Shown here piece by piece: positions 1,723 through 63,354 of a DNA stretch of 64,000 bases. The position numbers and the translations under genes were made by a program. Source of the stretch: Felis catus. Taxonomy: Eukaryota. The stretch is from contig NW_025408510.1 in the NCBI RefSeq assembly GCF_018350175.1, forward strand, positions 124,001 through 188,000. Reading direction: 5' to 3'. Below the pieces are notes generated by a model, which was not told where the DNA came from, ran no database searches, and worked only from the letters and a program-made list of their open reading frames with translations. Each line of letters starts with the position of its first letter. Positions within the stretch are counted from its first letter, which is position 1.

Positions 1723-1806
1723 CCGCTGCAGTTCTTGGTTCTTTTCCTCCAGCTGGGCCTCCATCTGGCGCAGCCTTTCCTCGATGTTGCCACGCCTCTG
1801 CTCGGC
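1723..1806 (-). CDS. PPFIA1: PPFIA1-like exon 10 equivalent ([28 protein letters not shown]), left copy only
   Basis: 84 nt, cacag acceptor, gtacgt donor; translated by hand. Confidence 0.92.
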
Positions 1807-4233
1807 CTGTGGGCGACAGTGGGGTCAGAAGAGCTGGCTGCCCCACACCACACGCTGTGCCTATGCACGACATGCTGTGAGAGGCCTTCCGCCTGCTCAC
1901 AGTCCCTACCGGCCTCATGCGTGCCAGTGGGAAGCAGTGGGCTTCCATGCTGGTGACCGGGGGTAGGCAATGGTCTCGTCCCCACCCCGGGTCCCGGATC
2001 CTTGGACGGTGCCTCGTCCCCCGGCAGACACCCCTGTCCACTCAGCACGGACAGGAGGAAGCAGCAAGCGGAAAGAGCAAACAGGCGTGCTGCCTTCCTA
2101 ACCTGGGAAGTTACTTCCAACAATTTAGCTTCCTCAGCAGCACAGTGTCCAAAGACAAAGGGTCGGGCTACACGGCTGACCAGGGACAGGAGAGAGGACA
2201 GGTGAGAAAAGAAACGGAGACTTGACATGCAGATCACAAAGGAGGAGAGACTCTGTTGGAGCCTGGGCCTGTGGGCGCCCAATGCCGCCTGCCCGACTTG
2301 ATGGCAGCCTTGAGGGTCATTATCCCATGACGAACCCACCCCCCTTCCCACTGGGACCCTCACTGCACTGGAACCGGTGACACAGAAGCACCGACAGGCT
2401 CCCTGCTACAGGTTCCCTCAGCCCAGGTTCCGGAAGGATGGACTGGCTGCCCAGTCATGTGCTCCCTCGTCCTGTGTGCATCACTCGATCCCAGCACCGA
2501 CTACATTATGTCTGGAAACTACCTCTTCAACTGCTGCCTTCGTCCGTGGGTGGTGAGGGCTGTGAGAACTGGGAGGGCAGGGACTGTGTCTGGCATGTTC
2601 CTCGACTCTATTTGTGGAACCTCCGAGTGAATTCCTTAAAGATTTATTTCTTACAGCGGTGTCTGGGTGGCTCAGTCGGTCGGGTTCTGACTCTTGGCTT
2701 CAGCTCAGGTCATGAACTCAAGGTTTGGGCGTTCGAGCCCTGTGTCAGGCTCTGTGCCGATAGCATGGAGCCTACTTGGCATTCTATCTCCTTCTTTCTG
2801 CCCCTCCCCTGCTCATGTATGTGCCCAGGCTCGCCCTCTCTGTCTGTGTCAAATAAATGAACATTTAAGAATTTTTTAAATAAAAACGATTGTGTTTAAA
2901 AGAGGATAGGATTTTCTCATTTCTCAGAAAAATTCTATGCTTTTTGTTTTTTTTTTTTTCCTTCGGTAAGCTCTACACCCAACGGGGAGCTCAGACTCAT
3001 GACCCTGAGATCAAGAGTCCCAAGCTCCACTGACTGAGCCAGCCAGGCACCCCTGTCCTTCTCTTGCCCAAGGCTACTATCTTGAGCTTTGAGTCGCTGA
3101 CTTAACTCTGAAAAGCAGTGAGTCTTAGATGCAGCCAACGGCAAACAGCACACGTCGGACAAAACCGGAGGGAACAAAACTGGGGATGATGCCTGCCGTT
3201 TGAAAAGCATTCCAATCTCAGACAAAGTAGCCCCGAAAACAGATCTCAGCTGGTTCGCGGACTTTGGCACGCCGACGTTACCGGTGAGAAATGAGATACG
3301 AGAACGGACCGCCTTGAAAATGACATTCCCACCATGGGACCCAGAAGGAAACGGGGGCCCCACCTTGCAGAGGGTGGCCACCCTCTGGGCCGGCTCGGCT
3401 TCCACCTCGGGCAGCGACTTGGCCTTCCTCGGGGTCTGCTGCAGCTTCCGCTCCGCCACCTCCAGGCGCTCTTGCAACTGGCGGTTTTGATCCGCAGTCT
3501 AGGAAATGAAGGCAAAGCATCAAAGTGTAGCAAGTCTTCTCTCCGTTTCCATTTTTAATAAAGTGAAACAAAATCTAAATGCAGAGATCTACTGTTAGTT
3601 CTGACGGAAGCCAACAGTTTGGTAGGTGCTTCAGAGTGAACCTTTCCTTTCTGCAAGGAGTCACCCACTGCCTTGGTCCTCCTTTCACTACGCAAAACAT
3701 GTCTTGCCAAACTCTTTGCTCTTCTTCAGTATCTTCAAAGAAGTCTTTCCAAAGACAAAGTTCCCACACAGTAAAGAAAACCCATCTTCTGGAGGAGCTT
3801 GCTCGCTCTTCCTGACCAGTTAAGGAGAGAAGGGTTCGGTCCTAACCCTTCGTAAACATATTTATACTGGGGTCCGAGGGCTCGCTACATAGGACATTCT
3901 GAGGTGGGCACATCAGCCAGCACAGAGCTTCTGAGAGCATGCCTGATGCCAGTTGAGTTCTTTTTGGAAGTGTACCATTATTCAACAAAAACACTCTCCC
4001 TCTTGACCAAAAACGTGGAAAACTTCAACGTGGAAAACTTAGACACGAGATTTTTTGTTAAAGGACTTTTAGGGAAGCCGAGGTGGCTCAGTCGGTTAAG
4101 CGTCCACCTTCGGCTCAGGTCATGATCTCATAGCTCACGGGGTCAACCCCGCCTCGTGCTCTCTGCTGACAGCTCAGAGCCTGGAGCCTGCTTTGGATTC
4201 TGTGTCTCCCTCTCTTGCCCTCCACTGCTCATG

Positions 4234-4275
<42 letters not shown>

Positions 4276-7200
4276 GGCTCCCTTTCTCAAAACTAAATAA
4301 GCGTTAAAATTATATAAAGTCATTTTAAAAATCATGTAAAAGGTGAGGTTTTTGCAAGGTTAACATGTGTTGCCACAGACTCCTTCCATCTTCTGTGTGC
4401 ATATGGCTCTGTGTGTATATACAGACCGCGTATCATGCTTTAAAACCCTCCAAAATAAATCACATGCTGTACACATAGTATTTCACGATCTGCCCTATAC
4501 ATTCATGACTTGGAACATGTTACGTGCTCTCAAACAGCATTCCTCCATGTCATTTTAATGGCTTCCTAGTATTTCACTTTGATTATCATTTTGGGTCGAC
4601 TGACACATTTGACAAACACACCAGGCAAACTCACTCTGTTTCCAAGAAGCTGGATGTGGTTTTCCTGTTCAATGCCGGATGACCTGAGACAACCAAGGAA
4701 GAGACGTGCTGCTTCCCAAAACACAGGGTCTCACAGCCTCACGCCAGACTGTGCTTCTGCACCTGCCATTCCCCCCGATCTCAGGTACTAACCAAAATGG
4801 CCAGCTGCCTACACATTCCCGGCCACTCCCTGCTCCTTTGGAAACAGTGCTAACAGGCAACAGAGTAACGTGCATGTAAGACAAGACAAAGAAGGAATCA
4901 AGGAGGGGAGCCCCATAACATGCTTCCATAAAATTCGAAAGAATTAAACCCTGGACGATGAAGTAACCCCGCTGGTCAACACAAGATTCTAAGATCCTAA
5001 AACCTTGACATTGACACTTGGTCCTTAACTTGACTTGTAATTAATAAAAGTGGAATGAAGTTCAACGAAACCAACGACCTGTCGATGCAGAGAGTCCTTC
5101 TTTGCGATCTCGTTTTCAAGTTTATCCTTGAGGTCGTGCAGAGAGGTGGCTTTGTGCTGTGCCCTGAGGCAGCGCTTCTCAAGGGTAGTGATCCTGTCTT
5201 GCATGTCTTCCTTCTGGGCCATGGCCTACAGCAGGTATTTCAGAGGGAAAACAGGGAAAGAGTTAGCGTACGACACATTAAGACACTCCAGACACAAAAA
5301 CCGGGCGAAATCCTCATTTTCCAAACAAACAGAAAAGTAGCATCCTCGGGGCACCTGGGTGGCTCAGCCGGTGCCGCTCTGTGAGTTGGCGCCCCGCGTC
5401 AGGCTCTGTGCCGACAGTGCGGAGGCTGCTCGGGATTCTGACCAGTTACCCAGGCTTATTCTTTCCCATGTGTTCAAAGACAAACGGATAATAAAGTCTC
5501 CCGGAAGTCACAACCTCGGTTGCCTCTGGACATCATTGAGCTTTCCACGGAACGGCGACTTGCCTCTGGAGGCACACACCATGAGACAACCATCCTTTTT
5601 CCCGGGGAAAAGGTGGATGAAATCTCATCCAATTACCACAAAGTTGAAGCAGCAGTGTTAACAAATGGAAGCCAAACTCCACCTTTCATATAACTGGAAG
5701 TCATCTTCTGTACCCTCACCCTGTAACAACATTGTATCCCATGGTGTCTGACACTGCAAATGGAACCAGAAGGTCCTGCCCTGCGTTTCTTGTCCAACAC
5801 CGGAAAGATTCCTCTTCCAGTCCTCCGTGTTTACTAAGCAATGTATGTCAGCAGTCTCAAGAGTGAAAGTGATGAGTCCTAAGAAATGATTTTCTAAATT
5901 CTCTGCATATTGAACTCTGCTGAGGGGTCTCTCCCCACCTTTGCCAAACAACAGGTTATAGAATTTCTGCAAATACTTTTGTTTTAAATTCTGACACGAT
6001 CTCACCCACACTGAGGTACTAAACAGACTGCTCGTGCACTTACACCCTCGAGGGTCTGACAGGGTCTTCCCGAGGTGGCATTGCCGGGCTGGGGGTGGGG
6101 TGTGCGGGGACTGTCCGCAAAGGGCAGCTCACAGTGACAGGAGGAGGCACAGAGAAACCATCCTACCCTTACTAGTTTCTGTGACAATGATCAGATTCCC
6201 ATCGACGACCACACGTGCAGAAGCGGCCGCACTCCTCCATGACCTTACACCAGGACCGGCGGGCTGCCCCTCGCTCACTCTGACCGCCACGACCAGAAGC
6301 ACGGAACCCTGGGAGGAGGGCAGGGCAGCAGAGCCGCCCTCACAAGGTCGTGCCCCCGGAAACGACCTGGCAGCACCACGCTGGTTCCTACGTGCCGAGT
6401 GTGTTCCCAAAACGGACCGAGAGCACGGCATGGGCCAAGCTCAGGTGGCCCACACTCCACACCCGAGGCCACTCCGCCGCCTGCCCGCCAGGCCTCGGCA
6501 GGGGAGAGCCCAGGGAGGACAGATTCCACCACGCAGACGGGGAGGCAGCCCGCCCGGGCCCCAGAATCACGTCCCGTTCTGCTGCTACTTCTACCAAACT
6601 CCAAACGTTCAAAACCCGTGGGAGACGAAGGCACACTGGGCAAGGCCGAACCAAACACCCCACGTTTAGCTCGACGACGGCGTGGCCATCTCAAATGACA
6701 CTCACTTCACGGACATCTCTTTGTAATATGGTGTTCATTGCTTCAGAAAGGATGAGGTCTTTCCTTGAGATGTCTAGGTCCTCTTCCAGCTTGGCCATGA
6801 GAGTGCACAGGGTAGCCAGGAGCTCTTTCATCTGGCTCTGCACCTTTGAAACTCAGAAAGGGAAGCAACATGTGAGGGCCCCCACTGCTAGTCTTCATAT
6901 GTTGTTTTAAAAACAATGGATAAAAAGGAAACCCCCTCCAATCAAATCCTGGGATGATGTCTGGAGCTTGAACTCTGCGTGTGGCCCCTAATTCTTCTTC
7001 TACGAAACTACACCCCTCCAGTGCCACACGTAGCTGCTCTCTCACCTGGAAACCAAGGGATTGAGTTTGTACACAGAGGTGTTTCATTAGTCCTTACTCT
7101 ACAGTGACCCTAAGATCCCCTTCGCCGCAAATAACATGACAGAATGCTGGTAAGGTTTTTCACGGATGCTCCGGTTCACAAACTTGCTTGTTAACCGCTT

Positions 7201-7970
7201 TCAATTTTACATTGGAGACAAATCTTCCCCGAAATAAATTACATTATGCAATTTGTACTAGCCAATCGATACCCACAACATTTCCACCAACTACTGCTTT
7301 TTAACCATACAGACCTGTCTTCTTACAAGAATTGAAGAAGATGAAAAGGAAACTCCAGTCACACAAACACACAAAGTGTGCCTAGAACACACAGCATGTG
7401 CACAAACTGAGAACCGCCGTGGCTAGGCACACCGTTTCAGCCTCGGTTTTGTCCTTCTCCAATATGGAGTTGAGGACCTTGAGCACCTCCGCCTCACTGG
7501 ACACGCCGGCCGGAGTCTTCACCTGTCGCCCGATGATGGTTTTTTGAAGAGCTCTCTCGTGCCTGGAGACGAGGAACTCCAAATGTTCCAGCAGCAGCTG
7601 GCGGGAGAGGCAAAAGGAACACCGTGTTTCAAGAACACCTTCAATTCCGGGCCTCAAGTTCACCAAATGCAAAACCAAGTCTGAATCCCTTCAATTCAGT
7701 TCCCAGGTAGGGAGCCACCCCCTCGAATGTGTTAAAATAGCCTTACTCCTCCTCACGGATCAAAGAAGGTTTGAGAAAAATAGGTCCCAGCCAACTCCAT
7801 GGGGACATGTGGACAAGGGGAGTGAATGGTGTCCTGTGTTTAAAGACACTGGCAGTGCGCCTACTGACCCTGGTGTTGTTTCTCTCCGCCTTCAGGTTGG
7901 CGATCTCCTCCTCCCTCTGCATGAGCTGCTCCCTGCAGGTGTGGAGCTCTGCAGCGAGAGCTGCACACTC
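1723..7970 (-). CDS. PPFIA1: Liprin-alpha-1-like partial duplicate, left copy (7 coding exons, open spliced frame, continues off window start)
   Basis: Exons 7869-7970, 7433-7597, 6974-7045, 6706-6843, 5079-5225, 3364-3498, 1723-1806, all AG/GT flanked and phase 0, no stop in 281 codons. Peptides such as [33 protein letters not shown] and [23 protein letters not shown] are liprin-alpha-1 coiled-coil sequence. Too diverged to be the orthologue itself. Confidence 0.85.
2656..2885 (+). mobile_element. CanSINE (mirror 56848-57077 -)
   Basis: gggtggctcagtcggt head, CT-rich tract, A tail. Confidence 0.9.
2940..3053 (-). mobile_element. Short CanSINE (mirror ~56681-56793 +)
   Basis: ggggtgcctggctggctcagtc...ttgggtgtagagcttac + A tail. 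Confidence 0.85.
3364..3498 (-). CDS. PPFIA1: PPFIA1-like exon 9 equivalent ([21 protein letters not shown]...ATLCK)
   Basis: 135 nt, cctag acceptor, gtgggg donor. Confidence 0.92.
4071..4310 (+). mobile_element. CanSINE, felid SINEC_Fc type (mirror ~55425-55664 -)
   Basis: ggtggctcagtcggttaagcgtcc...ctgacagctcagagcctggagcctgc, (CT)n. Confidence 0.92.
5079..5225 (-). CDS. PPFIA1: PPFIA1-like exon 8 equivalent ([18 protein letters not shown]...DSLHRQ)
   Basis: 147 nt, tag acceptor, gt donor. Confidence 0.92.
5347..5440 (+). mobile_element. Internally deleted CanSINE fragment (mirror ~54297-54390 -)
   Basis: ggggcacctgggtggctcag head joined to caggctctgtgccgacagtgcggag. Confidence 0.75.
6706..6843 (-). 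CDS. PPFIA1: PPFIA1-like 3' part of exon 7 ([12 protein letters not shown]...LQRDVRE)
   Basis: 138 nt, putative new acceptor tttcaaag, strong gtgagt donor. Confidence 0.85.
6974..7045 (-). CDS. PPFIA1: PPFIA1-like exon 5 equivalent ([24 protein letters not shown])
   Basis: 72 nt, ttccag acceptor. Donor is a weak gttcaa, so the 3' boundary is less certain. Confidence 0.8.
7433..7597 (-). CDS. PPFIA1: PPFIA1-like exon 4 equivalent ([19 protein letters not shown]...KTEAET)
   Basis: 165 nt, cag acceptor, gtgtgc donor. Confidence 0.92.
7869..7970 (-). CDS. PPFIA1: PPFIA1-like exon 3 equivalent ([34 protein letters not shown])
   Basis: 102 nt, cag acceptor, gtcagt donor. Confidence 0.92.
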
Positions 7971-8574
7971 CTGGGGTCGGAGAGGGGACAAAAGTGGAGA
8001 GACACAGGGGGTCTTTACCAGAGCACACCAGGCCTCCGTGGCCCTCCAGAGTCCCAGCACCCACCACCCTCAAGTAGCATCACACACACCAGTCCCCTCC
8101 TCACCACCCACAGGAGTTCCGGGGATTCTCGGAGGGACCGACACTCAAGGGGACAGACATTTTCAGGTGCCTGGCAGGTCTAGGACTCAGGAACTCTGCT
8201 GACTCGGGAGCAACAGGCCGAGAAGCCTCCTGCCCATCCGCAGCCTCTGGCCTCATCTGGCAAGCAGGCTTGTGGAGCGGCAGTGGGGAAAGGCTGACGG
8301 TACTCAAAAGCTGCTGTTTTAGCCTGAACCCCTGGCTCAATCAGACTCAACCATACCCAATGGACTGTTCAAAAATGATGGTAGGACTCTTGACGAAAGG
8401 GCGAGTTTACGACTTCTTTCCTTAGTCAAGCAGGAAATATTATGGAGGAAGGGTTTCTGAGGAGAGTGATGCCAGGGCCCACCACCCCGCGTGGGGTTTC
8501 TCTCCCACAATACTGAGCGCCCGCCCAGGACATGGCGTACAGGTGGGCTCCAAGGAGGTGGACGCACTCTCTCC

Positions 8575-8687
8575 AGTCAGTCGAGCGCAGAGCCCGGTGC
8601 AGGGCTCAATCCCTGAACCATGACATCATGACCTGAGCTGAAACCAAGAGTCAGACTCTTAACGCCCTGAGACACCCAGGCGCCCCC
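8575..8687 (-). mobile_element. CanSINE head (mirror 51025-51137 +)
   Basis: gggggcgcctgggtgtctcag...cagctcaggtcatga. Confidence 0.85.
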
Positions 8688-8915
8688 GAGCTTTTGTCTC
8701 TGTAGGACAAACGAGGGGATAAACGTTCACTTAACAACTGACATTCCAAATAAAGAGAGTTGTTGATTTCAGCAATTCTCGAAAATCCAAGTACAAACTG
8801 GTGACATACTTCAATTTCTTTCAAAAATTAACCCTTTCCAAATCAACGGGAATGTTATCACAGAACTGACCACGTTCCTTGCAATCTGACTTGACAAGGT
8901 GAACCCACAGAAGCC

Positions 8916-11900
8916 TATCTGATCCTTGAGGTAGGACTGTGCAGGCCCATTTCTATGTGGGGATTTTTGTTCCAATAAATACATTGGAAACTTTTCTGGA
9001 GATGTGTGACGTTTGGAAAGACTGGCAGATGAGCTGAGCAGCTACGAAGTATCAAAACTAGTAAGTAAAAGGGAGGCCAGGAGTGCATGAAATGTACGCA
9101 GATACTAGGCTATTAGAGCATTTCCTCTCCGAAAACATACACAAACCTACTCTCACAAGATAAAACGTATCATTTTGCACACAGAAACTGACCGTACCTA
9201 CATGGTGCCATTTGCAGTGAAGAGAAAGGCAAACAAATGTGGAGACGCAGGATTAAGTCCTTACCGCATAACACGAGCTGTAGCAGACGCTGTCCTCTGG
9301 GGGAAGGGTGCACCACCTCCTGTTACTATTGAGGTCCCCTCAAGTGTTGCACGAATCCACGAATCTGCCACTCAGCTCTTGGTAAGCACTTCCTTTCTCC
9401 AGTAAATCAAGCACCACAGGAGAAGTGATTTCTCAGGGTTCCTGCGTCATTTTCACCGTGATAAGGGCAATACCATGAAACTTAACTACACCCCGGAACC
9501 TGTCTGAAGTGTCCCCAGGGATGCTGGACGTGCTCCCGCGATGCAGAGAAGACTCATGGTATGACAAGAAAAGGCTGAATGGCCTGACATGTACTGAGGT
9601 CCACAGCTGCAGCTGCCAGCCGGCCAGCGTGAGGACCATGGAGGCACAAGGAAAGGGAAATTCTCGAAGCTCTCGCTGCGGCTACCCCAGCACATGCAAA
9701 AACCTGGTGCTATTTGTGAGACATCTTTGTGTCTCGTGTGGAAGATGTGGCATCTCTGTGGATGTAGGACTGCTGTGAGACGGGCACACCTGCAGACTCA
9801 ACTCAAACTGCAAGACAAGTGAGGACCTGACATCACGACGTAAGGCAGAAGGAAGGGAAGGATCGAAAACTGGCACATTTCAATGCAGGCACAGGACAGC
9901 CTGGTGGTTTTAGAAAGGGGTTTGGCTTTGAAATGGTCCAGACGATAGGAGAAGCAGCTTCCACCACGAAGAAGAAGGACACAGTTTCCCAGACGCCCCA
10001 GACAAGATTGCAGAGAAGAAGGAACTACCATCCACCGCATGTCAACCACTCCAACACAAAAAGTGAAAACCCAAGAAAATCAGTTGAGGAGACCATGGCT
10101 GCCTGCACAGGTTTTTCATGCAGAAGGAGGTGCCCTGTCGGGGGGAAAATGCCACAAACGACATTTATTCATGAGAAAGACAAGTGAGCGCCAAGATGTT
10201 GGGTAGGAAGGGGTGCAGTAGCTACCGACTGAGCGGATACAGGCGGGGTGTGAGCAGGGCAGCTGGCCCTGTGTAGGAAGCTCACCCCAAGGTCCTGAAG
10301 GCAACAAGTCCCAGTGGCCAGTGGTCTGCTGCACAACCAGAGCCCTTGCCCTGGACCAGTTCCATCCCGGCTCTGTCCCTCAACTCAGGAAGTACGCTGA
10401 AAGCAAGGGACTGTCCTCCAAAGTTCTTCTGACATTGGACAATGTCCTGGCCAACCCAGAACCCCACGGGTCAGCACCAAACGTGTCTTGGCGGCTCACT
10501 CGCTCCGGAGCGCAGCGGGTCTAAGTCAGCCTGCGGACCAGGGGCCACGAGGACCTGTGAGGCTCATGACACAGGCACGTTACAAGAAGGACAGTCAATG
10601 CTACCAAAGAGAACCGCCACAGAGGGAACATTATGAAAGTCAGGAAGATGCCAAGGGACGTTACAAAAAACTCTGGGGAAACCATCAAGCCCAACACAAT
10701 CAAGAAATCCCTGCTAGAGATGACTGTCCATATGACGTGCGTGATTTCCAGGACCTATGACAAAGCCAATCAGGAAACTCGTGAATGAGACTCTGCATAT
10801 GGCAAAAGAAAAAAAAGAAAAAGAAAAAGAGTTGGGGGATGCAGGGATTCAAAATGCGTATCCTAACAAAGGTCACGAGCACAGAGAAAAGCCCAGAGGA
10901 GGTCACAGAAGAAGACAGTATAGAGAGGAGATCTGGCGAAGCAGACGGAGGGCGAGGAAGGCGGCATGGAAGTGGCATCGCTGGAAAGCACGCTGCCACC
11001 AGGAGTGATCCGGCACAGTCTCGGCTCCTTTCCCACATGGACCCTTCCATGACAAAAGCACTGGGACTAAAGGCAGCCAGCCGTCTACAGAAACATTGGC
11101 CAGGAACAGAAAGGCCCTTCTGGAAAGCTGCAAAGACAGTGCCCGCCTCCACCCCCATACCGCCAGGCCCAAGGCCCAAGACTTCCCCATCTAGCGGGTC
11201 CCCCCCCATGCAGGTCTGCACATCAGACATTTGTGAGGACCCACCCCCACTTTCCAGACAGCAAATCCTCACCAAGGTGCTCAGTGAATCACTTCACCTG
11301 CCATGCACACGTGTGTGCGTGAAAATCGAGGGAGCATGCAGCCAGGCCACCCGGGACGCATGTGTGTCACCACCACCTAAGCGTTCATCAGGAGTAACAT
11401 CGTGTGCGAGAATTGTGTGCACTTGGACAGCCTATCCTCACATGGGCATAAGGGGATAAGATCTCACATAAAACGAATAACGTGTCATTCCATAACATGG
11501 GTTTCAAAAAGTGACATTACCTTGTAGCATGCCTCTCTCTGTCCCTGCCTGGAGAAAATGCCTCTCAGCCTACTATCACAGGCCATTTTTGTAAGGTAAC
11601 AATGTGTCCAGACTGTATTAGGAATATGGCTGTAAAACTGCAGGCTAGAAAAGCTTTGTAACCATGCATTCACCCGTGTCTCTCCTAGGCCATGACGAAG
11701 CAATCGTACTGATTACACCAGGCCATCACGAAGCATTCACCCTTCATTGGTAACGCATGAATTGTGACATCCGTAAATACACAGGAATCTTTCCAATTCC
11801 TCCCATTTCTGATGCATAGTGCTAATGATACACGTAACAACAGCGTAGTGTGTCACCTGAGCCAGCACTGATGTGGGTTCTGATAGACAATTCCTTCTAG

Positions 11901-12180
11901 AAACAAACGGAGAAGAAACTTAGGGATCCATACAGCGCAGAGCTGTGAACCTATTTCCCTATGACGTTAAACTGTTTCTCTAGCTTACTTCACTCGAACA
12001 ATATAGTATATAACACATACAAGATACAGGTGCTAATGCACTGTTTGTGTTTCTACTAAGGTTTCTGGACAACAGGAGAGTTTGAACAGTTAAGTTTTCT
12101 GGGGATGCAAAAGTTATACATGGATTTTCAATTGTGGGCAGGGTGGAACCCCGAACACCAAGTTGTTCTACGATCAGCTC
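8916..12180 (+). mobile_element. Degenerate near-full-length Tigger2-like (TcMar) DNA transposon, interrupted at about 11260-11880
   Basis: Recognised left end (aataaatacattggaaacttttctggagat), transposase remnants (agaaaggggtttggc...ggagaagcagcttc; aaaatgccacaaacgacatttatt) and right end (aaaagttatacatggattttc...ttgttc); boundaries approximate. Confidence 0.8.
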
Positions 12181-12264
12181 TACTCATCCTTGGGGAAGAA
12201 GGAAGCAAGCACGACCATTGTCAACAACAGAAAAGAGTCAAATAGAAATAGATTTAACGTTTTA

Positions 12265-12467
12265 GTTTTTTAATGTCATTCTTTATTTCTTAGAGGCAGA
12301 GACAGAAAGCAGCAGGGGAGGAGCAGCGAGAGAGGGAGACAAGGAATTCAAACTAGACTCCAGGCTCTGGGCTGTCAGCACAGAGCCCGAATCGGGGGTT
12401 ACCTCTCCAACACAAAGATCATGACCCGAGGTGAAGTCGGTCACTTAACCGACTGAGCCACCCAGGA
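12265..12467 (-). mobile_element. CanSINE (mirror 47245-47447 +)
   Basis: cctgggtggctcagtcggttaag...ctgtgctgacagcccagagcctggag. Confidence 0.9.
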
Positions 12468-15164: not shown

Positions 15165-15332
15165 NNNNNNNNNNNNNNNNNNNNNNNNNNNNNNNNNNNN
15201 NNNNNNNNNNNNNNNNNNNNNNNNNNNNNNNNNNNNNNNNNNNNNNNNNNNNNNNNNNNNNNNNNNNNNNNNNNNNNNNNNNNNNNNNNNNNNNNNNNNN
15301 NNNNNNNNNNNNNNNNNNNNNNNNNNNNNNNN
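15165..15332. other. Assembly gap (168 N)
   Basis: N run. Confidence 0.99.
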
Positions 15333-16742: not shown

Positions 16743-16766
16743 CACACACACACACACACACACACA
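16743..16766. repeat. (CA)n microsatellite (mirror ~42950-42974)
   Basis: Direct reading. Confidence 0.9.
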
Positions 16767-18991: not shown

Positions 18992-19025
<34 letters not shown>

Positions 19026-20194: not shown

Positions 20195-20246
<52 letters not shown>

Positions 20247-51741: not shown

Positions 51742-51843
51742 GAGTGTGCAGCTCTCGCTGCAGAGCTCCACACCTGCAGGGAGCAGCTCAGGCAGAGGGA
51801 GGAGGAGATCGCCAACCTGAAGGCGGAGAGAAACAACACCAGG
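51742..51843 (+). pseudogene. PPFIA1: PPFIA1-like exon 3 equivalent, right copy
   Basis: Mirror of 7869-7970; AGG (R) where the left copy has ATG (M). Confidence 0.9.
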
Positions 51844-52114: not shown

Positions 52115-52279
52115 CTGCTGCTGGAACATTTGGAGTTCCTCGTCTCCAGGCACGAGAGAGCTCTTCAAAAAACCATCATCGGGCGACAGGTGAAGACTCC
52201 GGCCGGCGTGTCCAGTGAGGCGGAGGTGCTCAAGGTCCTCAACTCCATATTGGAGAAGGACAAAACCGAGGCTGAAACG
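52115..52279 (+). pseudogene. PPFIA1: PPFIA1-like exon 4 equivalent, right copy
   Basis: Mirror of 7433-7597. Confidence 0.9.
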
Positions 52280-52666: not shown

Positions 52667-52738
52667 GTGAGAGAGCAGCTACGTGTGGCACTGGAGGGGT
52701 GTAGTTTCGTAGAAGAAGAATTAGGGGCCACACGCAGA
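52667..52738 (+). pseudogene. PPFIA1: PPFIA1-like exon 5 equivalent, right copy
   Basis: Mirror of 6974-7045. Confidence 0.8.
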
Positions 52739-52868: not shown

Positions 52869-53006
52869 GTGCAGAGCCAGATGAAAGAGCTCCTGGCTAC
52901 CCTGTGCACTCTCATGGCCAAGCTGGAAGAGGACCTAGACATCTCAAGGAAAGACCTCATCCTTTCTGAAGCAATGAACACCATATTACAAAGAGATGTC
53001 CGTGAA
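52869..53006 (+). pseudogene. PPFIA1: PPFIA1-like truncated exon 7, right copy
   Basis: Mirror of 6706-6843. Confidence 0.85.
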
Positions 53007-54511: not shown

Positions 54512-54658
54512 GCCATGGCCCAGAAGGAAGACATGCAAGACAGGATCACTACCCTTGAGAAGCGCTGCCTCAGGGCACAGCACAAAGCCACCTCTCTGCA
54601 CGACCTCAAGGATAAACTTGAAAACGAGATCGCAAAGAAGGACTCTCTGCATCGACAG
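54512..54658 (+). pseudogene. PPFIA1: PPFIA1-like exon 8 equivalent, right copy
   Basis: Mirror of 5079-5225. Confidence 0.9.
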
Positions 54659-55461
54659 GTCGTTGGTTTCGTTGAACTTCATTCCACTTTTATTAATTAC
54701 AAGTCAAGTTAAGGACCAAGTGTCAATGTCAAGGTTTTAGGATCTTAGAATCTTGTGTTGACCAGCGGGGTTACTTCATCGTCCAGGGTTTAATTCTTTC
54801 GAGTTTTATGGAAGCATGTTATGGGGCTCCCCTCCTTGATTCCTTCTTTGTCTTGTCTTACATGCACGTTACTCTGTTGCCTGTTAGCACTGTTTCCAAA
54901 GGAGCAGGGAGTGGCCGGGAATGTGTAGGCAGCTGGCCATTTTGGTTAGTACCTGAGATCGGGGGGAATGGCAGGTGCAGAAGCACAGTCTGGCGTGAGG
55001 CTGTGAGACCCTGTGTTTTGGGAAGCAGCACGTCTCTTCCTTGGTTGTCTCAGGTCATCCGGCATTGAACAGGAAAACCACATCCAGCTTCTTGGAAACA
55101 GAGTGAGCTTTTTCTGGGGTGTTTGTCAAATGTGTCAGTCGACCCAAAATGATAATCAAAGTGAAATACTAGGAAGCCATTAAAATGACATGGAGGAATG
55201 CTGTTTGAGAGCACGTAACATGTTCCAAGTCATGAATGTATAGGGCAGATCGTGAAATACTATGTGTATAGCATGTGATTTATTTTGGAGGGTTTAAAGC
55301 ATGATACGCGGTCTGTATATACACACAGAGCCATATGCACACAGAAGATGGAAGGAGTCTGTGGCAACACATGTTAACCTTGCAAAAACCTCACCTTTTA
55401 CATGATTTTTAAAATGACTTTATATAATTTTAACGCTTATTTAGTTTTGAGAAAGGGAGCC

Positions 55462-56236: not shown

Positions 56237-56371
56237 ACTGCGGATCAAAACCGCCAGTTGCAAGAGCGCCTGGAGGTGGCGGAGCGGAAGCTGCAGCAGA
56301 CCCCGAGGAAGGCCAAGTCGCTGCCCGAGGTGGAAGCCGAGCCGGCCCAGAGGGTGGCCACCCTCTGCAAG
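56237..56371 (+). pseudogene. PPFIA1: PPFIA1-like exon 9 equivalent, right copy
   Basis: Mirror of 3364-3498. Confidence 0.9.
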
Positions 56372-57232: not shown

Positions 57233-57352
57233 TCTAAACTAAACAAAGAGACTAACAAACGTTTGTCAGGCACTAATGACCAGCTCCTTTTTGAATCTGA
57301 TGACCGGTTTCAGAGTCGTCTTAAAGAGAGGATGGCTGCTGTGGAAGATAAG
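57233..57352 (+). pseudogene. PPFIA1: PPFIA1-like exon 11 equivalent, 5'-truncated (SKLNKETNKRLSGTNDQLLFESDDRFQSRLKERMAAVEDK)
   Basis: Hand translation matches liprin [33 protein letters not shown]; gtagga donor; begins at the deletion junction. Confidence 0.88.
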
Positions 57353-58650
57353 GTAGGACATGAGAGACAGCGGCTGAGTGCCCCCGTCCTCACAGAGGAG
57401 ACGCTCACGTTGTGATGCTGAGGAGCAGCGTGGAGCAGAGGCTAACAGCCACTGCAGAAAGTAGAAATGATTCTTTCACACGGAAAAACTGTAGGCTGTT
57501 ACCCACTGCCTACGTTAAGTTCCCAGTGTCGTGTCCCTGCCCGACGTCTGTGTGCGGGAAGGTGCGTCTCACTGTCTAGGAGAGGAGTATGGTCTGGGGA
57601 GGGCCCGAGAGTAAGTATTTTAGGCCTTTACTAACTGAGACGTAAGGAGTAAGCTAGCTTCATGCTAATCAAAGATGGGCACAGAAACAGCCATAGGCAG
57701 TATATAACTAAGGGGAGGGGCCGGGTGCCGATAACCCTTTGTTGATAGGACCCGGCGGGGGCTGGATGTGGTCGGCAGGCCCTCGTTTGCCACCCCTGTG
57801 CTGGAACCTTCAGCCTGGTTCTTGTCTGGGGAGCTAATTTCTACCTCTTTTGTCCAGACGGACCGGTAGGAGTGCGCAGTTCTGTCAAGCATTTAACCAG
57901 CTGAAAACAGAGTATCTCCTGTTCCATCTCCTGCCTTCCCTCTTTTCATCTGGGTTGGAAAGAGTCTAAGCCTGGACTCTTACAGCATCATAACGGATAC
58001 ACTTGAGGTGTAACGGGAGGGAAGCAGTATCATAGGATCTCTGTGAGAGAAGCTCTGGTGGTGACAGTTGGATGCGGACCTGATACTACCGGTTCTGGTG
58101 ACACCTGTGTCCCTGTAGATGAGCCCAGAATCTTCCCTAAGACTGGCACTTGGAGACACCAGTGAGCAATGCTAATTACACGACACACTTATTTTGGGTA
58201 AAACCCATTATGAGGTGCGTTATTATACCCCACGTGAGGTTCTACCTTGATCACTGGGGCCAGCCTTTCGGTAGAATAGTTGTATGTGAGATTGGAAGTA
58301 TATGTACGAAACGTAGGTCAGCTTTCCCAAGTGACTGAGGCATCACAGACCCTAAAAGCTAGTACAAACCAGTGTACCTGCTGCAAGTAAACTTAGGAAC
58401 TTGTCATACTTACAGTCAGACAGTGATCCGTGAAGAAATTGTACATGGACAAAGTATGAGTAAAGGCTGTTACTGCAGTTTCACAGACAGCATTTCACTC
58501 TGTGGTCATGTGACCCGGTTCGTTGGTATGGCCATCCGCTCCATGCCTTGTCTGTGGTGCTGCGTTATTGTAAAGAGAAACGTAGGCATGCTCTAGCATG
58601 TGGAACGTTTGAAAGAATCAACACTAAAGGACTGTCAGTACCTTTCTCAG

Positions 58651-58713
58651 AAGTCTCTGTTAGGAGAAGTTGGCAATCTGAAAAAACAGTTATAAGAAAC
58701 GCAACGTGAGAAG
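58651..58713 (+). pseudogene. PPFIA1: PPFIA1-like exon 12 equivalent with in-frame stop (KSLLGEVGNLKKQL*ETQREK)
   Basis: 63 nt, ctttctcag acceptor, gtattt donor, TAA at 58693-58695. Confidence 0.88.
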
Positions 58714-59029
58714 GTATTTCCATCTCTCAATCATTCAGTGATCGGTTGAGACTGGAAAGGAGCAGGTGGCCTCTGGGGCTCACACTTCCTCCATGGCGAG
58801 CCACCACTGTGCTTTCGAGCGGCCCCATGCTCGCTAGTCTGAATGGCACGCATGTGGCGGAGTTGGAGCCGAGCAGCCTATGGGGTTCAGATTTCTGAGT
58901 CCCTTCGGGGGTTCGCTCGAAAGCTAAAATGTTCGCGTAAACCTTTCATTGAGTGCAGCGTTGCCCAGCAGGAAGGTAACAGGTGACACGGGTGTCATCC
59001 CAAGGATTCTCGCGGCTGCATTTGAAATG

Positions 59030-59262
59030 GTCAAACAGACGGGTGATGTTAGTTTTCATGTAGCCCGATGCAGGCAACATGTTATTGTATCATGTAAATA
59101 GTGTAGACGTGAAGGAGCTACTCTACAATGTTTTTCCACATTTAGTCCTTGCAACCCACGGGGCGTCTCACAGTTCCATCCCCTGTGGTCGGGACCAGCC
59201 CCATTTTGGGCGCTCAGTTAGCCACGTGCGGCGGTGTCTCTGGCCTGGGACGGCACTGCCTA
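59030..59262. mobile_element. MER3-like hAT fossil
   Basis: gaccagccccatttt...ctcagttagccacgtgcggc...ggacggcactg end motif. Confidence 0.5.
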
Positions 59263-59639
59263 GGGGGTAGTTGTGTGACCGAAGCTCCTCATCGGTTTTG
59301 CTCCCTGGCACTGCGTGTGCAGACGTGAGGCTGGGCTGCACAGGGTCCACGACGGAGCACGTGCCTATTGCACAGAAGGGCTATTCCCCCACCGCCCAGA
59401 AAGTCCTGCTCCTCTCTACATAATTAGGAAGAAGTCCTAGTGGCTCGGTGTTTCTCCTCTGTAACCTTGCTATGCCTGAGACCTGACTGTTCAGTAGGGT
59501 TTAAGACGTTCACTTGGTGATCCGGGTGTTTACTGGAGGACTCTTGGAGAGAGTGGTCTTCGGGTTCGTAACTGCTAAATTTACCCAGCGTGGTTATGAT
59601 GGTCAGCATTTCAGCACACTTGATGCAAGTAGTGTTTTC

Positions 59640-59932
59640 CATTTTTTCTTGAATTCTAATGAACCTACAGTGTTGTATCAGTTTCAAGTAGACAGTGTAC
59701 CGTTTCAACAATTGCACACGTGACTCTGTGCTCGACACCATCACTGTGGTCACCGTGTGTCACCATACAGAGTCCTTAGGGTATCACGGACCGTATTCCC
59801 TGTACTGTGCTTTTCATCCCCGAGACGGCCTTATTTGATATCTGCATGCTGATGCCTCCTAATCACCATCATCTCTTTTGCCCACTGCCCCTACTCTCCT
59901 CTCCTCTGGCCACTACCAGTTTGTGCTCTGTG
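59640..59932 (-). mobile_element. Old L1 3' UTR fragment
   Basis: gtcaccataca...tattccctgtactgtgcttttcatcccc...cctctggccactaccagtttgtgctctg. Confidence 0.7.
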
Positions 59933-60006
59933 TTGAACGGACTCTTGATGCAAAGACTAGTTAACCTTGCTTGCACTGAGTGTCATTGTCATTTGCTGCT
60001 TTGCAG

Positions 60007-60086
60007 GATCACCTTCTCCGGAAGATGGAAGCACTGAGGGCCGTATTAAAGCGGGCAAGAGTGAGAGGCTCTTCGCGTCACCATGG
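60007..60086 (+). pseudogene. PPFIA1: PPFIA1-like exon 13 equivalent (DHLLRKMEALRAVLKRARVRGSSRHHG)
   Basis: 80 nt, ttgcag acceptor, gtatga donor, ends in phase 2. Confidence 0.88.
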
Positions 60087-63000
60087 GTATGACACTTCCC
60101 GGTTCACAGATCTGTTTGAGATGCGGCTGGGGGTGGCTTCCCTCTGTCACCAGTATGACCTGAACCAGCTCATGGTTCCAAAGTAGAACCGTGGGTGTGC
60201 TATGGTATGACCCGAACCGGATCAGAGTTACACACAATAACCCTGAGGGTGTTGTAGTCTGACGCGATCCATTTTCCAGGTACCAGCTAACTGAGGATGG
60301 GGCGGGGCTGGGGGGGACACTGCCCTTCACCGTGCCTAACATGAACCACCTCACAAACACCTATGTTAGCACCTGCTGTGTTTCTTCCAGAGGAATCCTT
60401 TGGCCGAATGGGCAGAGTGACTGGATGTAGCTCAGGGAGCCGGTAGCTTCGTAGTTGGCAAGAGGGAGAAGTAAAACCTCATTCCAGAGGTTAGGTTTGG
60501 AATCTCAGGAGACCGGGAGGCATGACAGAGCTCACAGCCATGGGAGGAGGAGTGGAAGTTAGGGAAAGTTCTGTTCGTGTTTGGGTGGGTTTATTTGCGG
60601 CCTCCCTCCACCGAGTGTGGCAGTGATGGTGTGGGGCTAGGAGGGGTCCAGCGTGCCAGGTTCGGCCCAGCATCCCTGGAAGCTATGGTCCCTTCCACAA
60701 CGCCAGTGGGGTCACCATGGGAGTGCACACGTGGCCATGGTTGTGAAGGTCACCTTGACATTGGTGGGGTTAGCGCAGTGCTCGCAGTTTCTTATATTTT
60801 TGAAAAGACCGGAGAATGACATGTAATCGCTGTAACTCTGTTGGGACGTTGGTGAGTCGCCTGTGAGGGAGTGGGTCAGCCGGCTTGTGAGCTGCGTCCT
60901 GCAGACAGTAATTGTCAGCGAGGTATTAAAAGGTTTGCTTGCTTCTTTGTAGGAAATGGGTACCATGTGAGAGTCATTCTGGTGTGACAGTGCCTCGAGT
61001 AGCTGACTGGGCCCCCTTGGGTGCAGGAAGCAGGCTCCTGCTCCAAAGGCAGGCCCCTTCAGGCCTCACTGGGGTGTGTGCGGCTGCCGACGGGGGCTCT
61101 CGGGAGAGTCGAGGGTGTGCTGTGGCTGTCCTTGTTGAGCCTGCTTGTAGGAGAGAGGAGAAGTCAGTACAGGTAGGGGCACAAGCGGCCCTCCGTGTCC
61201 ACGGAACTACTGGTGGCACAGCGAATGTGTGTCCGGAGAGAGAAGCACACAGGAAGATCCGGGCACAGAGCAGCCTCTTGGTTGGCTGACGGAGATCCTC
61301 GCCAGCAAGACACCAGTGTGCTGAGTGTCACCATTCCAGGGCTTGAAGACGGGCATGTGTGAGGAGGCCAAGGGAGCAAACAGTGGATGCGGTGCAGGCC
61401 CCTCGAGGGCATGTTGGAGTTCTCAAGGGAAGGGGCTGTGCAGGCCCCTGGAGGGTGGCACCCTGGGGCAGTTGCCATAAGAGGGACGTCCACGCCCATC
61501 ACCCGCCTGAGGTGAGCTGGCCAAGGAGAAGGATAGAGAGGATCGCAGTGCGCCTGTGGTTGCGGAGGCGTTGGCCGCGGTCACAGGTGGCCTTGTGGTC
61601 AGAAGACCCCGGGCAGGAGACCGGCTGAGGAACAGGGTCTGTTTGAAGCCGTCTCACAAAGTGCTCTCTCGTGTGGTGGCAGAAGAGAGGCTGGTGGGAG
61701 CTGTGTCGCCGTGAGCGGCCGGGGGCCGTGGGGATGAGTCTGAGAAGGCGGCAGGCAGGCTGCACAGCTGAGCCCTCCTGGCACGACCTCACAGCCACGT
61801 CTTCTGTTTGTGTCCTCCTCTAGCAAGATGACATGGTCTGGGTTGCAGAGGAAAAGAAAGGTGTCGGACCAACTTCCACACGCAGGCGGGGCAGATGGGA
61901 GAGAGCTCTGGGATAGGACTGGATGCAGGGTGTTGGGGTCGGGAGCCAGGGAGCCTGAGATAGGGTGTCAGAGTCAGGGGACACACGCGAACCTCCGTGG
62001 AGCCACGAACCATGCCAGGTCCCATGCGGGGTGGCGTGTGTGGCTCTCCCCGATTGGCGATGTGTCGTGGCCGCACAGCGGTGAAGCTAGACCACCTGAG
62101 CTCAGGTGAGCAGCTCTTCTGGGAATGGGGGGACCAGAGGAGGGGAAGATGGTTGTGGCCAGCGGGCAGTTCCAACTTGGCTGTCTTAGAAGCAATCAGT
62201 ACCCTGAGGCAGCACGTGTCAATGACGTTTCTTGAAAGGCCGCAGAGAAGAGCTTGAAGCACCACAGAGGAGACGCCCTGTGTGGTGGCTCTGTCTCCAG
62301 GCCACAAGGGGTGACGCCAGGGGCCCCCTCTTTAGTTGATGTGAATCAGATGGGTGTGTTCTGTCTCCCGAGACCATAAGGATTTGTGAAATGGAAGGCA
62401 GCCTCTGTTCTTTTCCAGAGAGCGAGGAGCCACTGGACTCCCGTGCAGGGTTCAAGTGTGGAGGGTGAACCCGTGGCTGAGGCCGGGCACATGGGCTGGC
62501 GGGTGCTCCTTCACAGCTGCTGCCCAGAGCTTCCTGCCCAGAGCCTTTGCTGAGGGGAGCAGCTGACAGCCCAATTACGTGACTCCACCCTAGGGGCTCC
62601 GGGGCTCCATGGAACTTTTCTGGAGACTTCTGTGGCCAAGGGGGACATTTGTGTGTTAGTCTAACTGCACAGAGGCCAGAGACGCTTTTGCCTCGGAAAC
62701 ACCGGGCGCATTGCCACCTCCTGTGTACGGGAGCTGCGAGGTGTGGTTCCCGAGGATCCTGCCGCGGATGCCCCTGGGGCGCCCGATAGTGGCTGGTGGA
62801 GGAAAACCTGGGGTCACCTGGCATCACAGCAAGGGCCTTGGCACACGTGGGCCGATGGCAGGTGAAGGCCAGAGGGACGTATAGGAGTGCTTTCCGGTCA
62901 GTTGGGCAGGAGGTGGTGCAGACACGCAGGACGACAGCTTGACTGGGGGCAGGCGCTGCTCCACCTCGGGGACGTCTGGGCCGCGGGGATGCGTTGCACC

Positions 63001-63212
63001 TGCTGGGCCCGGGAGACCCTGTGTCCACAGGGCCCGGCTAGCGGGCTTGCACTGCAGCCAGGGGCAAGGATGCCTTCCTTGGAGACCTTTTTCTGTGACC
63101 TCATTTTCCCAATTGACGGGTTCTGGCCTGGCTGACAAAGTCCACTTTTCTTTAGATAACAACCTTGGTGTGTGTGTGCGTGTTTGTTTGACCGTTTTCC
63201 TCCGTGTTTCAG

Positions 63213-63354
63213 GCGGACGCACGTCGGCAGCATCCCAGCTTCCAGGTTCCGTCTGGCGGACAGCCCCACGGATGCCAGCAGCACCAGCAGCAGCGCGGTG
63301 TTGCGGCGCCACCGGAAAGGCCGTGTGGCCCGTCTGCGACATGAGCCTTCCAAG
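63213..63354 (+). pseudogene. PPFIA1: PPFIA1-like exon 14 equivalent (RTHVGSIPASRFRLADSPTD...SAVLRRHRKGRVARLRHEPSK)
   Basis: 142 nt, tttcag acceptor, phase compatible with the previous exon, followed by gcaagg (GC-type or mutated donor). Confidence 0.88.

Follow-up and report, generated by a model that had tools for sequence, protein, structure and literature searches.

Large palindromes with near-identical arms are reportedly known from the sex chromosomes, as P1-P8 of the human Y and in the X of primates. Their arms are tens of kb long and ~99% or more identical, enclose a short unique spacer and carry coding genes of multicopy families; identity along the arms is patchy, as under gene conversion, and the centre is described as unstable. 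We analysed a stretch of 64,000 nucleotides from the domestic cat (Felis catus, RefSeq assembly GCF_018350175.1, contig NW_025408510.1; hereafter the window) that holds a palindrome like these in arm length, identity, spacer, gene content and patchiness, with an apparent deletion beside its centre. It differs from the sex-chromosome palindromes in being probably autosomal and in carrying two genes with different 3' ends, and its arm identity (99.2-99.8%, 95.6% at the centre) is lower than that of the Y palindromes.

The genes in the arms follow PPFIA1 (liprin-alpha-1) exon by exon from ancestral exon 3 to at least exon 14, and both share helices H2/H3, the CC2 coil (PF25526) and, wherever a check was possible, the intron positions. 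PPFIA1 has exons 1-2 (helix H1), exon 6 and a whole exon 7, all of which the cat genes lack, whereas the cat genes have new 5' exons and a new promoter-like region, are multicopy and have annotated products without SAM domains. Another point of comparison is human SRGAP2C, a truncated duplicate that acts on its parent via a shared dimerisation domain. Like SRGAP2C, the cat genes are partial, lineage-specific duplicates that kept a self-association domain and lost effector or partner-binding domains; unlike it, the cat family has diverged much further from its parent and is amplified to a far greater degree, and while SRGAP2C acts on its parent, the cat protein is likened to it by sequence, with a tentatively predicted PPFIA1 heterodimer. 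As a whole, we consider it fairly probable that the locus is a real palindrome of felid PPFIA1-derived multicopy genes, with conversion between the arms and coiled-coil products. It would belong to a cat-family-specific, fast-evolving gene family cut from the synaptic scaffold gene PPFIA1.

Geometry of the palindrome and identity along its arms

A repeat search and a blastn comparison of the two halves of the window located inverted arms at 2499-29744 (left, 27,246 bases) and 30491-57234 (right, 26,744 bases) around a unique spacer of 746 bases (29745-30490), in close agreement with the original prediction of ~27.2 and ~26.7 kb around ~755 bp. The halves align in four colinear inverted blocks. 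Three of them, 2499-15164 against 57234-44548 (99.30% identity), 15333-20142 against 44384-39571 (99.81%) and 20269-28324 against 39440-31390 (99.19%), give an arm identity of 99.19-99.81% over 25.6 kb; the fourth, the innermost 0.9 kb (28843-29744 against 31393-30491), is 95.58% identical. The locus thus combines arms of at least ~8 kb, an identity of ~99% or more and a short unique spacer, by which palindromes are recognised.

Apart from a match of the (TC)n run that abuts the left arm (29759-29808), the spacer has no second copy in the window; it is asymmetric and contains no N, and the centre of the palindrome is gap-free. The arms differ in length because a stretch of 518 bases (28325-28842), with GGCT microhomology at both edges, exists in the left arm only, which is most simply explained by a deletion in the right arm near the centre. 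Altogether, 141 substitutions and 17 indels (including this one and another of 25 bases) separate the arms, and the palindrome is therefore no trivial fold-back. As read from one assembly, it is confirmed as a real inverted segmental duplication.

Three N runs occur in the window, all of them intronic; none was filled and no reading frame depends on any. Two mirror each other (15165-15332 on the left, 44385-44547 on the right), with the 100 bases on either side identical between the arms, and the third (39441-39570, 130 N in the right arm) faces 126 real bases with an (AAAG)n run at 20143-20268 on the left. Since these gap flanks are identical and the arm-to-arm offset shifts by just 16 and 8 bases across the gaps, order and orientation are supported. 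The mirrored N runs, in a region rich in repeats and left unplaced by at least one cat assembly (XP_044907489.1 lies on a 226-kb scaffold), might nevertheless point to a fold-back chimera, or to an assembler having placed two haplotypes or paralogues head to head, with misjoined junctions near 1705-1711 and at 57234. We regard this as highly improbable: the centre is gap-free, a unique and asymmetric spacer is unlike the product of a fold-back read, and the arms show 4.4% divergence over their inner 0.9 kb, with the 518-base indel in one arm, so that both sequences must exist and are too different for alleles. The left flank of the window (1-1710) shows no relation to the right flank or to any other part of the window, and contains no Pfam match.

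Divergence between the arms forms a mosaic, amounting to ~3% beside the spacer versus ~0.2% in the middle 22 kb. The inner 2.2 kb (zone 27000-29744, mirrored by 30491-32700) account for 68 of the 141 differences, the middle 22 kb for 49 and the outer 2.5 kb for 24, with 6 in the final 200 bases. In the middle, exact tracts of 2.8-4.5 kb lie between clusters of differences, e.g. four within exon e1. This pattern is compatible with arm-to-arm gene conversion, which, if recurrent, would keep most of the arms 99.8-100% alike, while the zones next to the spacer and the outer ends would escape it. The step in identity from the inner 2.2 kb to the middle could also be read as youth of the arms instead of ongoing conversion, an old, short central inverted repeat having later been extended by a second duplication. 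Such a history is improbable, as divergence climbs again at the outer end, the patchy middle with its exact tracts bears the usual signature of conversion tracts, and it would be contrived to have a second duplication copy itself precisely to either side of a repeat already in place.

Gene structure and unequal 3' ends

Liprin-alpha exons lie on the minus strand in the left arm and on the plus strand in the right arm, so that the two genes face outward. Each is PPFIA1-derived and intron-containing, running from ancestral exon 3 behind new 5' exons, and has a CpG island upstream, as had been anticipated: the CpG-rich blocks at 22.0-23.0 kb and 36.5-38.0 kb have a G+C content of 0.60-0.70 and an observed/expected CpG ratio of 0.55-0.76. 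The promoter-like island of the left gene (22000-23200, minus strand) holds exons e1 (23081-23191) and e2 (22461-22586), that of the right gene (36500-38000, plus strand) e1 (36519-36629) and e2 (37123-37248). Cat RefSeq isoforms X4 and X5 start at the ATG at 37123; right e2 has the donor CAG/GTGAGT (cut between CAG and GTGAGT), and at the donor site of left e1 an insertion of 1 base shifts the frame. Exon e2b (38591-38683, plus; left mirror 21026-21118) has TGA as its first codon in cat, and its internal ATG at 38627 starts the UniProt cat models. An alternative 5' exon at 45841-46002 (plus; left mirror 13710-13871) serves as start in cheetah, leopard, Prionailurus and cat type-2 models.

The PPFIA1-derived exons, given here for the plus strand of the right copy with left mirrors in second place, begin with e3 (51742-51843; 7869-7970), which encodes helix H2 of CC1, and e4 (52115-52279; 7433-7597), which encodes the end of H2 and H3 and contains an internal cryptic donor used by some models. 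Of ancestral exon 5 a relic remains (52667-52738; 6974-7045), whose donor is weak and which is skipped in models of cat, Leopardus and cheetah; ancestral exon 6 is absent, and e7' (52869-53006; 6706-6843) comprises the 3' part of exon 7, with a new acceptor in front of it. These are followed by e8 (54512-54658; 5079-5225), encoding the CC2N coil with the RIM-contact residues, by an alternative terminal exon with a stop codon (54888-54956; 4781-4849) that is used in Leopardus XP_045329313.1, and by e10 (56237-56371; 3364-3498). All exons are of phase 0 with AG/GT sites, and the splice sites are intact in both copies. Neither a relic of PPFIA1 exons 1-2 nor a recognisable neighbouring gene was found in the window.

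At the outer boundary of the palindrome, each copy holds a different half of ancestral exon 11. The first half, e11a, lies outside the left arm (1723-1807, minus strand) and has no right-hand counterpart in the window; the GT at 1722/1721 could be its donor, and liprin likeness stops near 1705-1711. The second half, e11b, is found on the right (57233-57352, plus), where it begins 2 bases inside the arm end, the final bases of the arm giving the AG acceptor; this exon has diverged far more than the rest (67% to the D1-type models of cat), and XP_044907489.1 skips it. Downstream, e12 (58651-58713, plus) carries an in-frame TAA (58693-58695) at a position that is Q in Neofelis XP_058552017.1, and is skipped in cat models; e13 (60007-60086, plus) matches XP_044907489.1 over its full length and e14 (63213-63354, plus, with a GC donor) does so with 100% identity. 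Over the right-copy exons this cat RefSeq protein is 100% identical, and its further exons lie beyond the end of the window, past which the right gene extends. In this assembly, the left copy keeps the first half of exon 11 and then breaks into unrelated DNA, and the right copy, with the first half missing, the second half decayed and a stop in exon 12, would reach its intact downstream exons only by skipping the broken ones, as in its RefSeq model.

In the cat RefSeq and UniProt models that share the left-type exon 3, exon 11 is intact and is followed by downstream exons missing from the window. Hence there is either a third, near-identical copy, or assemblies disagree on the left end of the window. 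The intact exon 11 could also be taken as a sign of the head-to-head misjoin discussed above; against this, RefSeq annotates two different genes with unlike 3' parts on one scaffold, and its right-copy model skips exactly those exons that are broken in the window.

All five coding differences between the arms (5/5) are non-synonymous, the sole one within liprin-derived exons being in e3 (R on the right, 51791; M on the left, 7921). Together with the broken right copy, the TGA opening e2b, the frame problem in left e1, the wide differences in exon use among annotated models and the rapid protein change among felids (6.1% between cat and Prionailurus, at or above the neutral-drift expectation by a rough estimate), this might mean that the structure is real and the genes are transcribed pseudogenes, i.e. 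neutral duplication debris with frames left open by youth and gene conversion. We find this rather unlikely. At 74% identity to the parent, the 229-codon core still has an open frame, and when neutral drift to 70% protein identity was simulated 2000 times, 229 codons stayed open in 2.25% of the runs, a chance computed before counting indels. Models from nine species likewise have the core frame open, RIM-contact residues and heptad positions stay constant amid changing surroundings, and both copies have symmetric exons whose splice sites are intact. RefSeq lists several isoforms, which, given how its pipeline works, would at most imply that the genes are expressed.

The felid liprin-alpha-1-like family

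The window exons share 74% protein identity with bear and orangutan PPFIA1, as against 98% between bear and orangutan over the same stretch; on these values, and given the multicopy family, the window genes do not look like the PPFIA1 orthologue, which would be expected as a well-conserved single copy at the FADD-PPFIA1-CTTN locus. The felid 'liprin-alpha-1-like' models form one clade (support 100/100) within the liprin-alpha-1 clade (95/84), and nine felid species have annotated members. Distinct copies number at least 3-4 in cat, where models show at least 1-2 beyond the two in the window (type 2; the copy with intact exon 11). The 9 models of Leopardus geoffroyi are spread over two chromosomes and four unplaced scaffolds, and Neofelis has at least 7; the family is thus present in many near-identical copies within one genome. 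A lineage-specific multicopy family distinct from PPFIA1, as originally predicted, is what these data support. Databases list the family, and no description of it was found in the literature searched.

A likeness to X/Y amplicons had also been suggested and finds no backing in the placement of homologues in other felids. The felid X measures ~130 Mb, and the chromosomes carrying relatives in six felid species measure 86.1, 87.3, 88.5, 88.7, 92.7 and 94.9 Mb, none of them X-sized (other relatives are on unplaced scaffolds). Judging from these relatives on 86-95 Mb chromosomes, the only ones placed, the palindrome is probably autosomal.

As to the origin of the family, a genomic copy of PPFIA1 from ancestral exon 3 onward would have landed away from the parent gene and then gained a CpG-island promoter and new 5' exons. 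The derivative would have lost exon 6 and part of exon 7, come to end before the SAM domains, and then multiplied. The palindrome would sit inside a cluster of this Felidae-specific PPFIA1-derived family, with two copies placed head to head in the window and transcribed outward.

Similar 'liprin-alpha-1-like' expansions exist in equids and ruminants, where they receive passing mention in papers. Like the felid genes they are PPFIA1-derived, comprise the coiled-coil part only and occur in many copies on several chromosomes or scaffolds; their clades (equid 100/100, ruminant 100/99) are separate from the felid one. Unlike the felid genes, those of equids repeat the exon 3-4 block and then jump to exon 8, and those of ruminants keep parts of exons 6/7 and later exons.

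Products and a possible role in liprin-alpha assemblies

The sole Pfam domain in the products is PF25526 (CC2), which scores 3.9e-79 and 7.6e-43 for cat models with residues equal to the window exons. In sequence comparisons the exons match liprin-alpha-2 PDB entries, namely 8Z22 for CC2N (1.3e-33), 7D2H for helix H2 (6.9e-21) and 7D2E for helix H3 (1.5e-4). The window contains no exons for helix H1 of CC1, and no SAM match was found in the scanned cat, Prionailurus and Leopardus models (259-447 residues), the longest of which ends before the SAM region; SAM exons might lie past the window end. Short coiled-coil derivatives had been proposed; the coiled coil is borne out, and shortness applies to part of the products, as the longest family models reach 500-560 residues.

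Judged by sequence, the products are coiled-coil proteins that retain H2/H3, the helices of liprin self-assembly, and CC2N, the coil that binds RIM, and lack H1 and the SAM123 hub, whose partners are LAR phosphatases, CASK and liprin-beta. Most likely, therefore, they join or compete with liprin-alpha coiled-coil assemblies but provide these with no link to the SAM partners, and they may act as modifiers or decoys.

For the complex of bear PPFIA1 (243-385) with cat P0280 (109-248), structure prediction gave a score of 0.54, compared with 0.00 for the best of 3 controls, with a contact agreement of at least 99% between runs and a partner pLDDT of at least 84. Of 78 solved complexes, 51 reach the pass mark for this score, as do 2 of 108 mismatched pairs; passes at 0.60 or under comprise 5 of the 78 solved complexes and all 4 passing mismatches. 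A like complex has been solved, and the pass may reflect recall, so that the prediction at most hints at co-assembly of the cat protein with PPFIA1. The predicted partners are relatives of a solved homodimer.

Of the RIM interface residues, six are kept in 31/31 family proteins and R346 in 29/31, and the RIM contact change E337Q is fixed in 31/31 (PMC12151379). This family-wide E-to-Q change probably alters RIM binding.

Architecture of the palindrome and probable exchange between its arms

A repeat search and blastn of the two window halves resolve the inverted repeat into four colinear inverted blocks, with a left arm of 27,246 bases (2499-29744) and a right arm of 26,744 bases (30491-57234) around a gap-free, asymmetric spacer of 746 bases (29745-30490). 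Within the window no second copy of the spacer was found, except for a (TC)n run at its left edge. According to blastn, the blocks are 99.30%, 99.81% and 99.19% identical between the arms, and the innermost 0.9 kb is 95.58% identical; compared base by base, the arms differ by 141 substitutions and 17 indels. The large palindrome postulated in the original prediction is borne out with these dimensions. The unequal arm lengths go back to 518 bases found in the left arm only (28325-28842), with GGCT at both edges, a difference that looks like a microhomology deletion in the right arm. The inner arm ends differ by ~4% and each of them is joined without a gap to the unique spacer; both arm sequences must therefore exist. 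An interpretation of the arms as alleles was rejected, as they are too different, and so was a fold-back read, which would yield neither the spacer nor such differences between the arms. Judged from the assembled sequence, the palindrome is almost certainly a real structure of the cat genome, and the window adds a new, well-defined case to a known kind of structure.

Three runs of N are present in the window, each of them intronic. The left run (15165-15332) mirrors one in the right arm (44385-44547), and the arms do not differ within 100 bases of either edge; the mirrored runs could reflect either the same hard-to-read sequence in both arms or masking. Both mirrored runs adjoin the head of a carnivore SINE. 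The other run of the right arm (39441-39570; 130 N) corresponds to 126 real bases in the left arm, including an (AAAG)n run. Since the arm-to-arm offset shifts by just 16 and 8 bases across the gaps (blastn), order and orientation of the sequence across them are supported. The reading frames are independent of the N gaps, and no gap was filled.

The differences between the arms are unevenly distributed. The inner 2.2 kb hold 68 of them (~3%), the outer 2.5 kb have 24, and the middle 22 kb account for the other 49 (~0.2%). Exact arm-to-arm tracts reach up to 4.5 kb, and there are small clusters of differences, e.g. four within exon e1. Such patchwork identity is the pattern that gene conversion produces and thus argues for conversion from arm to arm; a single recent duplication would not give patchwork identity. 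In the innermost 0.9 kb the arms show 4.1% mismatches. If this part escapes conversion, published mammalian neutral substitution rates would give the palindrome a rough age of 9-20 million years, which would be about the age of the living felids.

Gene anatomy and a divided exon 11

Sequences of exon size that match liprin-alpha lie in the right arm on the plus strand and in the left arm on the minus strand. One exon directly matches liprin-alpha-2 in the PDB; compared with 1.84 billion representative proteins, the same exon retrieves liprins, with short felid, equid and ovine models on top. Gene models were built with the retrieved liprin-like proteins as guides, and single exons and database proteins served as queries. 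The right gene, on the plus strand, starts with e1 (36519-36629), e2 (37123-37248; ATG at 37123, strong donor), e2b (38591-38683; internal ATG at 38627) and an alternative 5' exon (45841-46002). These are followed by e3 (51742-51843), the first exon derived from PPFIA1, e4 (52115-52279), a relic of ancestral exon 5 with a weak donor (52667-52738), e7', the 3' part of ancestral exon 7 (52869-53006), e8 (54512-54658; left mirror at 5079-5225), an alternative terminal exon (54888-54956), e10 (56237-56371), the second half of ancestral exon 11, e11b (57233-57352), e12 (58651-58713; TAA at 58693), e13 (60007-60086) and e14 (63213-63354; GC donor), and the gene continues with further exons past the window end. 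The left gene is the mirror of e1 to e10. All exons from e1 to e12 have a length divisible by three and are flanked by AG and GT; a transcript that skips any of them stays in frame, and this accounts for the many different isoforms in the annotation. A CpG island (G+C up to 0.70, CpG observed/expected up to 0.76) contains or precedes the 5' exons, and no relic of PPFIA1 exons 1-2 was found in the window. A new first exon has taken the place of the original one, exon 6 and part of exon 7 have been lost, and the genes face outward; on all these points the predicted anatomy is right in its essentials. No other genes were detected in the arms or the left flank (10 ORFs without Pfam match), and Rfam gave no match in 7800-51900.

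Of the five coding differences between the arms, four are located in the 111 bases of e1 (36519-36629 vs 23081-23191), all of them protein-changing, and left e1 has a 1-base insertion at its donor. As the RefSeq cat models begin in e2, e1 may be untranslated in the cat. Exon e2b opens with TGA in the cat (38591-38593 and its mirror), at a position that encodes arginine in a Leopardus model; translation of an e2-e2b transcript would thus end at the TGA and have to begin anew at the ATG at 38627.

Among the annotated cat proteins, XP_044907489.1, located on a scaffold of 226,129 bases, is identical to e7', e8, e10 and e14 of the right copy (100%), and e13 is matched over its whole length. It skips e11b and e12, and in e14 it shares with the right copy a D that the other cat models do not have. 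The isoforms X4 and X5 (the latter XP_044907485.1) start at the ATG at 37123 and have the left-type M in e3, where the right copy has R (7921 on the left, 51791 on the right); X4 has an intact exon 11, and both isoforms continue with another set of downstream exons, which is absent from the window. Either the cat has a third near-identical copy, or the left end is different in another assembly or haplotype. The models of a second type of cat copy (UniProt entries with our working labels P0151 and P0266) join exon 4 of another, slightly different copy to the GT that follows the first half of exon 11, as would be expected if other copies in the cluster lie head to tail or if the models are chimeric. 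For annotation, the window makes clear how such loci came by confusing names, liprin-alpha-1-like and liprin-alpha-3-like, and by chimeric models.

Beyond the arm ends at 2499 and 57234, the left flank (1-2498) shows no homology on either strand to the right flank (57235-64000); the flanks are unrelated, and arms that simply continue outward were rejected. Both flanks nonetheless hold pieces of one ancestral exon: the first half of exon 11 lies in the left flank at 1807-1723, with a likeness to liprin that extends to ~1705-1711, and the second half begins 2 bases inside the right arm end. Aligned to any of the liprin references, the two pieces adjoin each other to within one or two codons, e.g. 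in the database protein P0142, where one covers residues up to 450 and the other begins at 452. Leopardus and Neofelis models with the distinctive read-through tail of the right copy have an intact exon 11, and thus the right copy lost ~0.8 kb in the cat lineage. The boundary fits an inverted duplication that ended inside exon 11, the right copy later losing a stretch up to the same point; it also fits one inversion with breaks at the outer edge of the left arm and in exon 11, which flipped the whole palindrome together with that stretch. Each of these two readings requires one breakpoint coincidence, and an assembly misjoin is a third possible account of the left outer junction. No simple single event accounts for the split of exon 11 between the copies (1705-1807 and 57233-57352).

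A felid gene family with parallels in equids and ruminants

Searches with Leopardus and cat proteins and cluster look-ups brought together models named liprin-alpha-1-like or liprin-alpha-3-like from Felis catus, Prionailurus bengalensis, P. viverrinus, Leopardus geoffroyi, Acinonyx jubatus, Lynx canadensis, Panthera pardus and Neofelis nebulosa; no non-felid carnivore was among the close matches in these protein searches. Leopardus contributes nine models, distributed over two chromosomes (94.9 and 88.5 Mb) and four unplaced scaffolds, and Neofelis at least seven, on one 92.7-Mb chromosome; those from cheetah, lynx and fishing cat lie on chromosomes of 86.1, 87.3 and 88.7 Mb. The felid X measures ~130 Mb, and none of the placed felid homologues is on a chromosome near this size; the palindrome is probably autosomal. 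Palindromes of this size with multicopy genes are known mainly from sex chromosomes, and a well-resolved, probably autosomal one would make it possible to test whether they are maintained by gene conversion and selection outside X and Y.

In a maximum-likelihood tree of 38 rows (one donkey row omitted) the felid rows form one clade (100/100) with a long stem (0.35), nested in the liprin-alpha-1 clade (95/84), and the window rows cluster with cat models (99/95). The second cat type (P0151, P0156) differs from the window copies by 11% of the protein, and its exon-4 signature is also found in Prionailurus, Panthera and Neofelis models, so the family probably diversified before the living felids split. 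In the literature searched we found no paper treating the felid family, nor the equid and ruminant families described below; the name liprin-alpha-1-like is mentioned there just in passing, for loci in studies of pig, cattle and sheep. Overall, the first reading of this sequence is supported; the palindrome, almost certainly real, carries a felid gene family that is listed in databases but undescribed.

Multicopy liprin-alpha-1-like families derived from PPFIA1 are found in equids and ruminants, too (including P0001, P0003, P0004, P0007, P0009, P0158, P0160, P0194, P0199 and P0200). They form separate clades and differ in exon make-up, and in horse models the exon 3-4 block is repeated up to three times. 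The node bearing on a common origin of the felid, equid and ruminant families has a support of 86/22, and they may have one origin or three. Of our findings, this parallel to the felid family is the most intriguing lead. A near-invariant mammalian scaffold protein gave rise to a fast-changing, SAM-less coiled-coil family in cats, with similar families in horses and ruminants.

The 229-codon core of the felid genes (e3, e4, e7', e8 and e10) is open at 74% identity to PPFIA1, a protein of which bear and orangutan share 313 of 320 residues over the core region. In simulations of unconstrained substitution to 70% identity, indels not counted, the frame stays open in 2.25% of 2000 runs, and the core is open in the models of all felid species found; these observations speak for constraint. 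Decay or very relaxed selection is favored by the five coding arm differences, all of which are protein-changing, and by a difference of 6.1% of residues between cat and Prionailurus; the TGA in e2b, the donor insertion in left e1 and the defects in exon 11 and exon 12 of the right copy also speak for decay. From these sequence comparisons we read the family as being under selection to remain coding while changing fast, with single copies eroding.

Retained interfaces of the encoded proteins

The cat models identical to the window exons have PF25526, the liprin CC2 domain, as their sole Pfam match, and they match PDB structures of liprin-alpha-2 H2 (7D2H, 7D2G), H3 (7D2E) and CC2N with the RIM1 C2B domain (8Z22). 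Self-assembly of liprins is driven by H2 and H3, and SAM123 serves as the hub that binds LAR phosphatases, CASK and liprin-beta (PMC8044993). CC2N of liprin-alpha-2 (residues 300-404) binds RIM1 via E328, Q332, D335, E337, R339, R346 and L348, and ELKS is bound by CC2C (PMC12151379), most of which is lost in the right copy of the window. All 31 felid family proteins keep E328, Q332, D335, R339, L348 and A350, and 29 of them R346. The position of E337, which in liprin-alpha-2 pairs with RIM1 R1201 (PDB 8Z22), is E in PPFIA1 and Q in 31/31 felid family proteins; it is encoded in e8 (54512-54658, 5079-5225). The interfaces kept (H2/H3 self-assembly and the CC2N-RIM contact) are structurally understood and show one fixed change at a key contact, which makes function directly testable at the bench.

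The coiled-coil half of PPFIA1 might be a recurrent target of lineage-specific amplification, with felids, equids and ruminants each having built a multicopy, SAM-less family of liprin-alpha-1 derivatives. The cat copies would be kept alike in palindromes and evolve fast with the frame held, and the change from E to Q would retune them as modifiers of liprin/RIM assembly, e.g. in regulated exocytosis of germ cells, under a genetic conflict of some kind; taken as a whole, we regard this scenario as rather unlikely.

A heterodimer of bear PPFIA1 (243-385) and the cat protein P0280 (109-248) was predicted with a score of 0.54, compared with 0.00 for the best of three controls, which supports the pair weakly; as the chains are relatives of a solved homodimer, the prediction stands for likeness and not for binding. 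Of 78 solved complexes 51 reached the pass mark, as did 2 of 108 mismatched pairs; among the passes, scores of 0.60 or less comprise only 5 of those 78 solved complexes, yet all 4 mismatches that passed. The heterodimer runs agree in at least 99% of contacts, with a partner pLDDT of at least 84.
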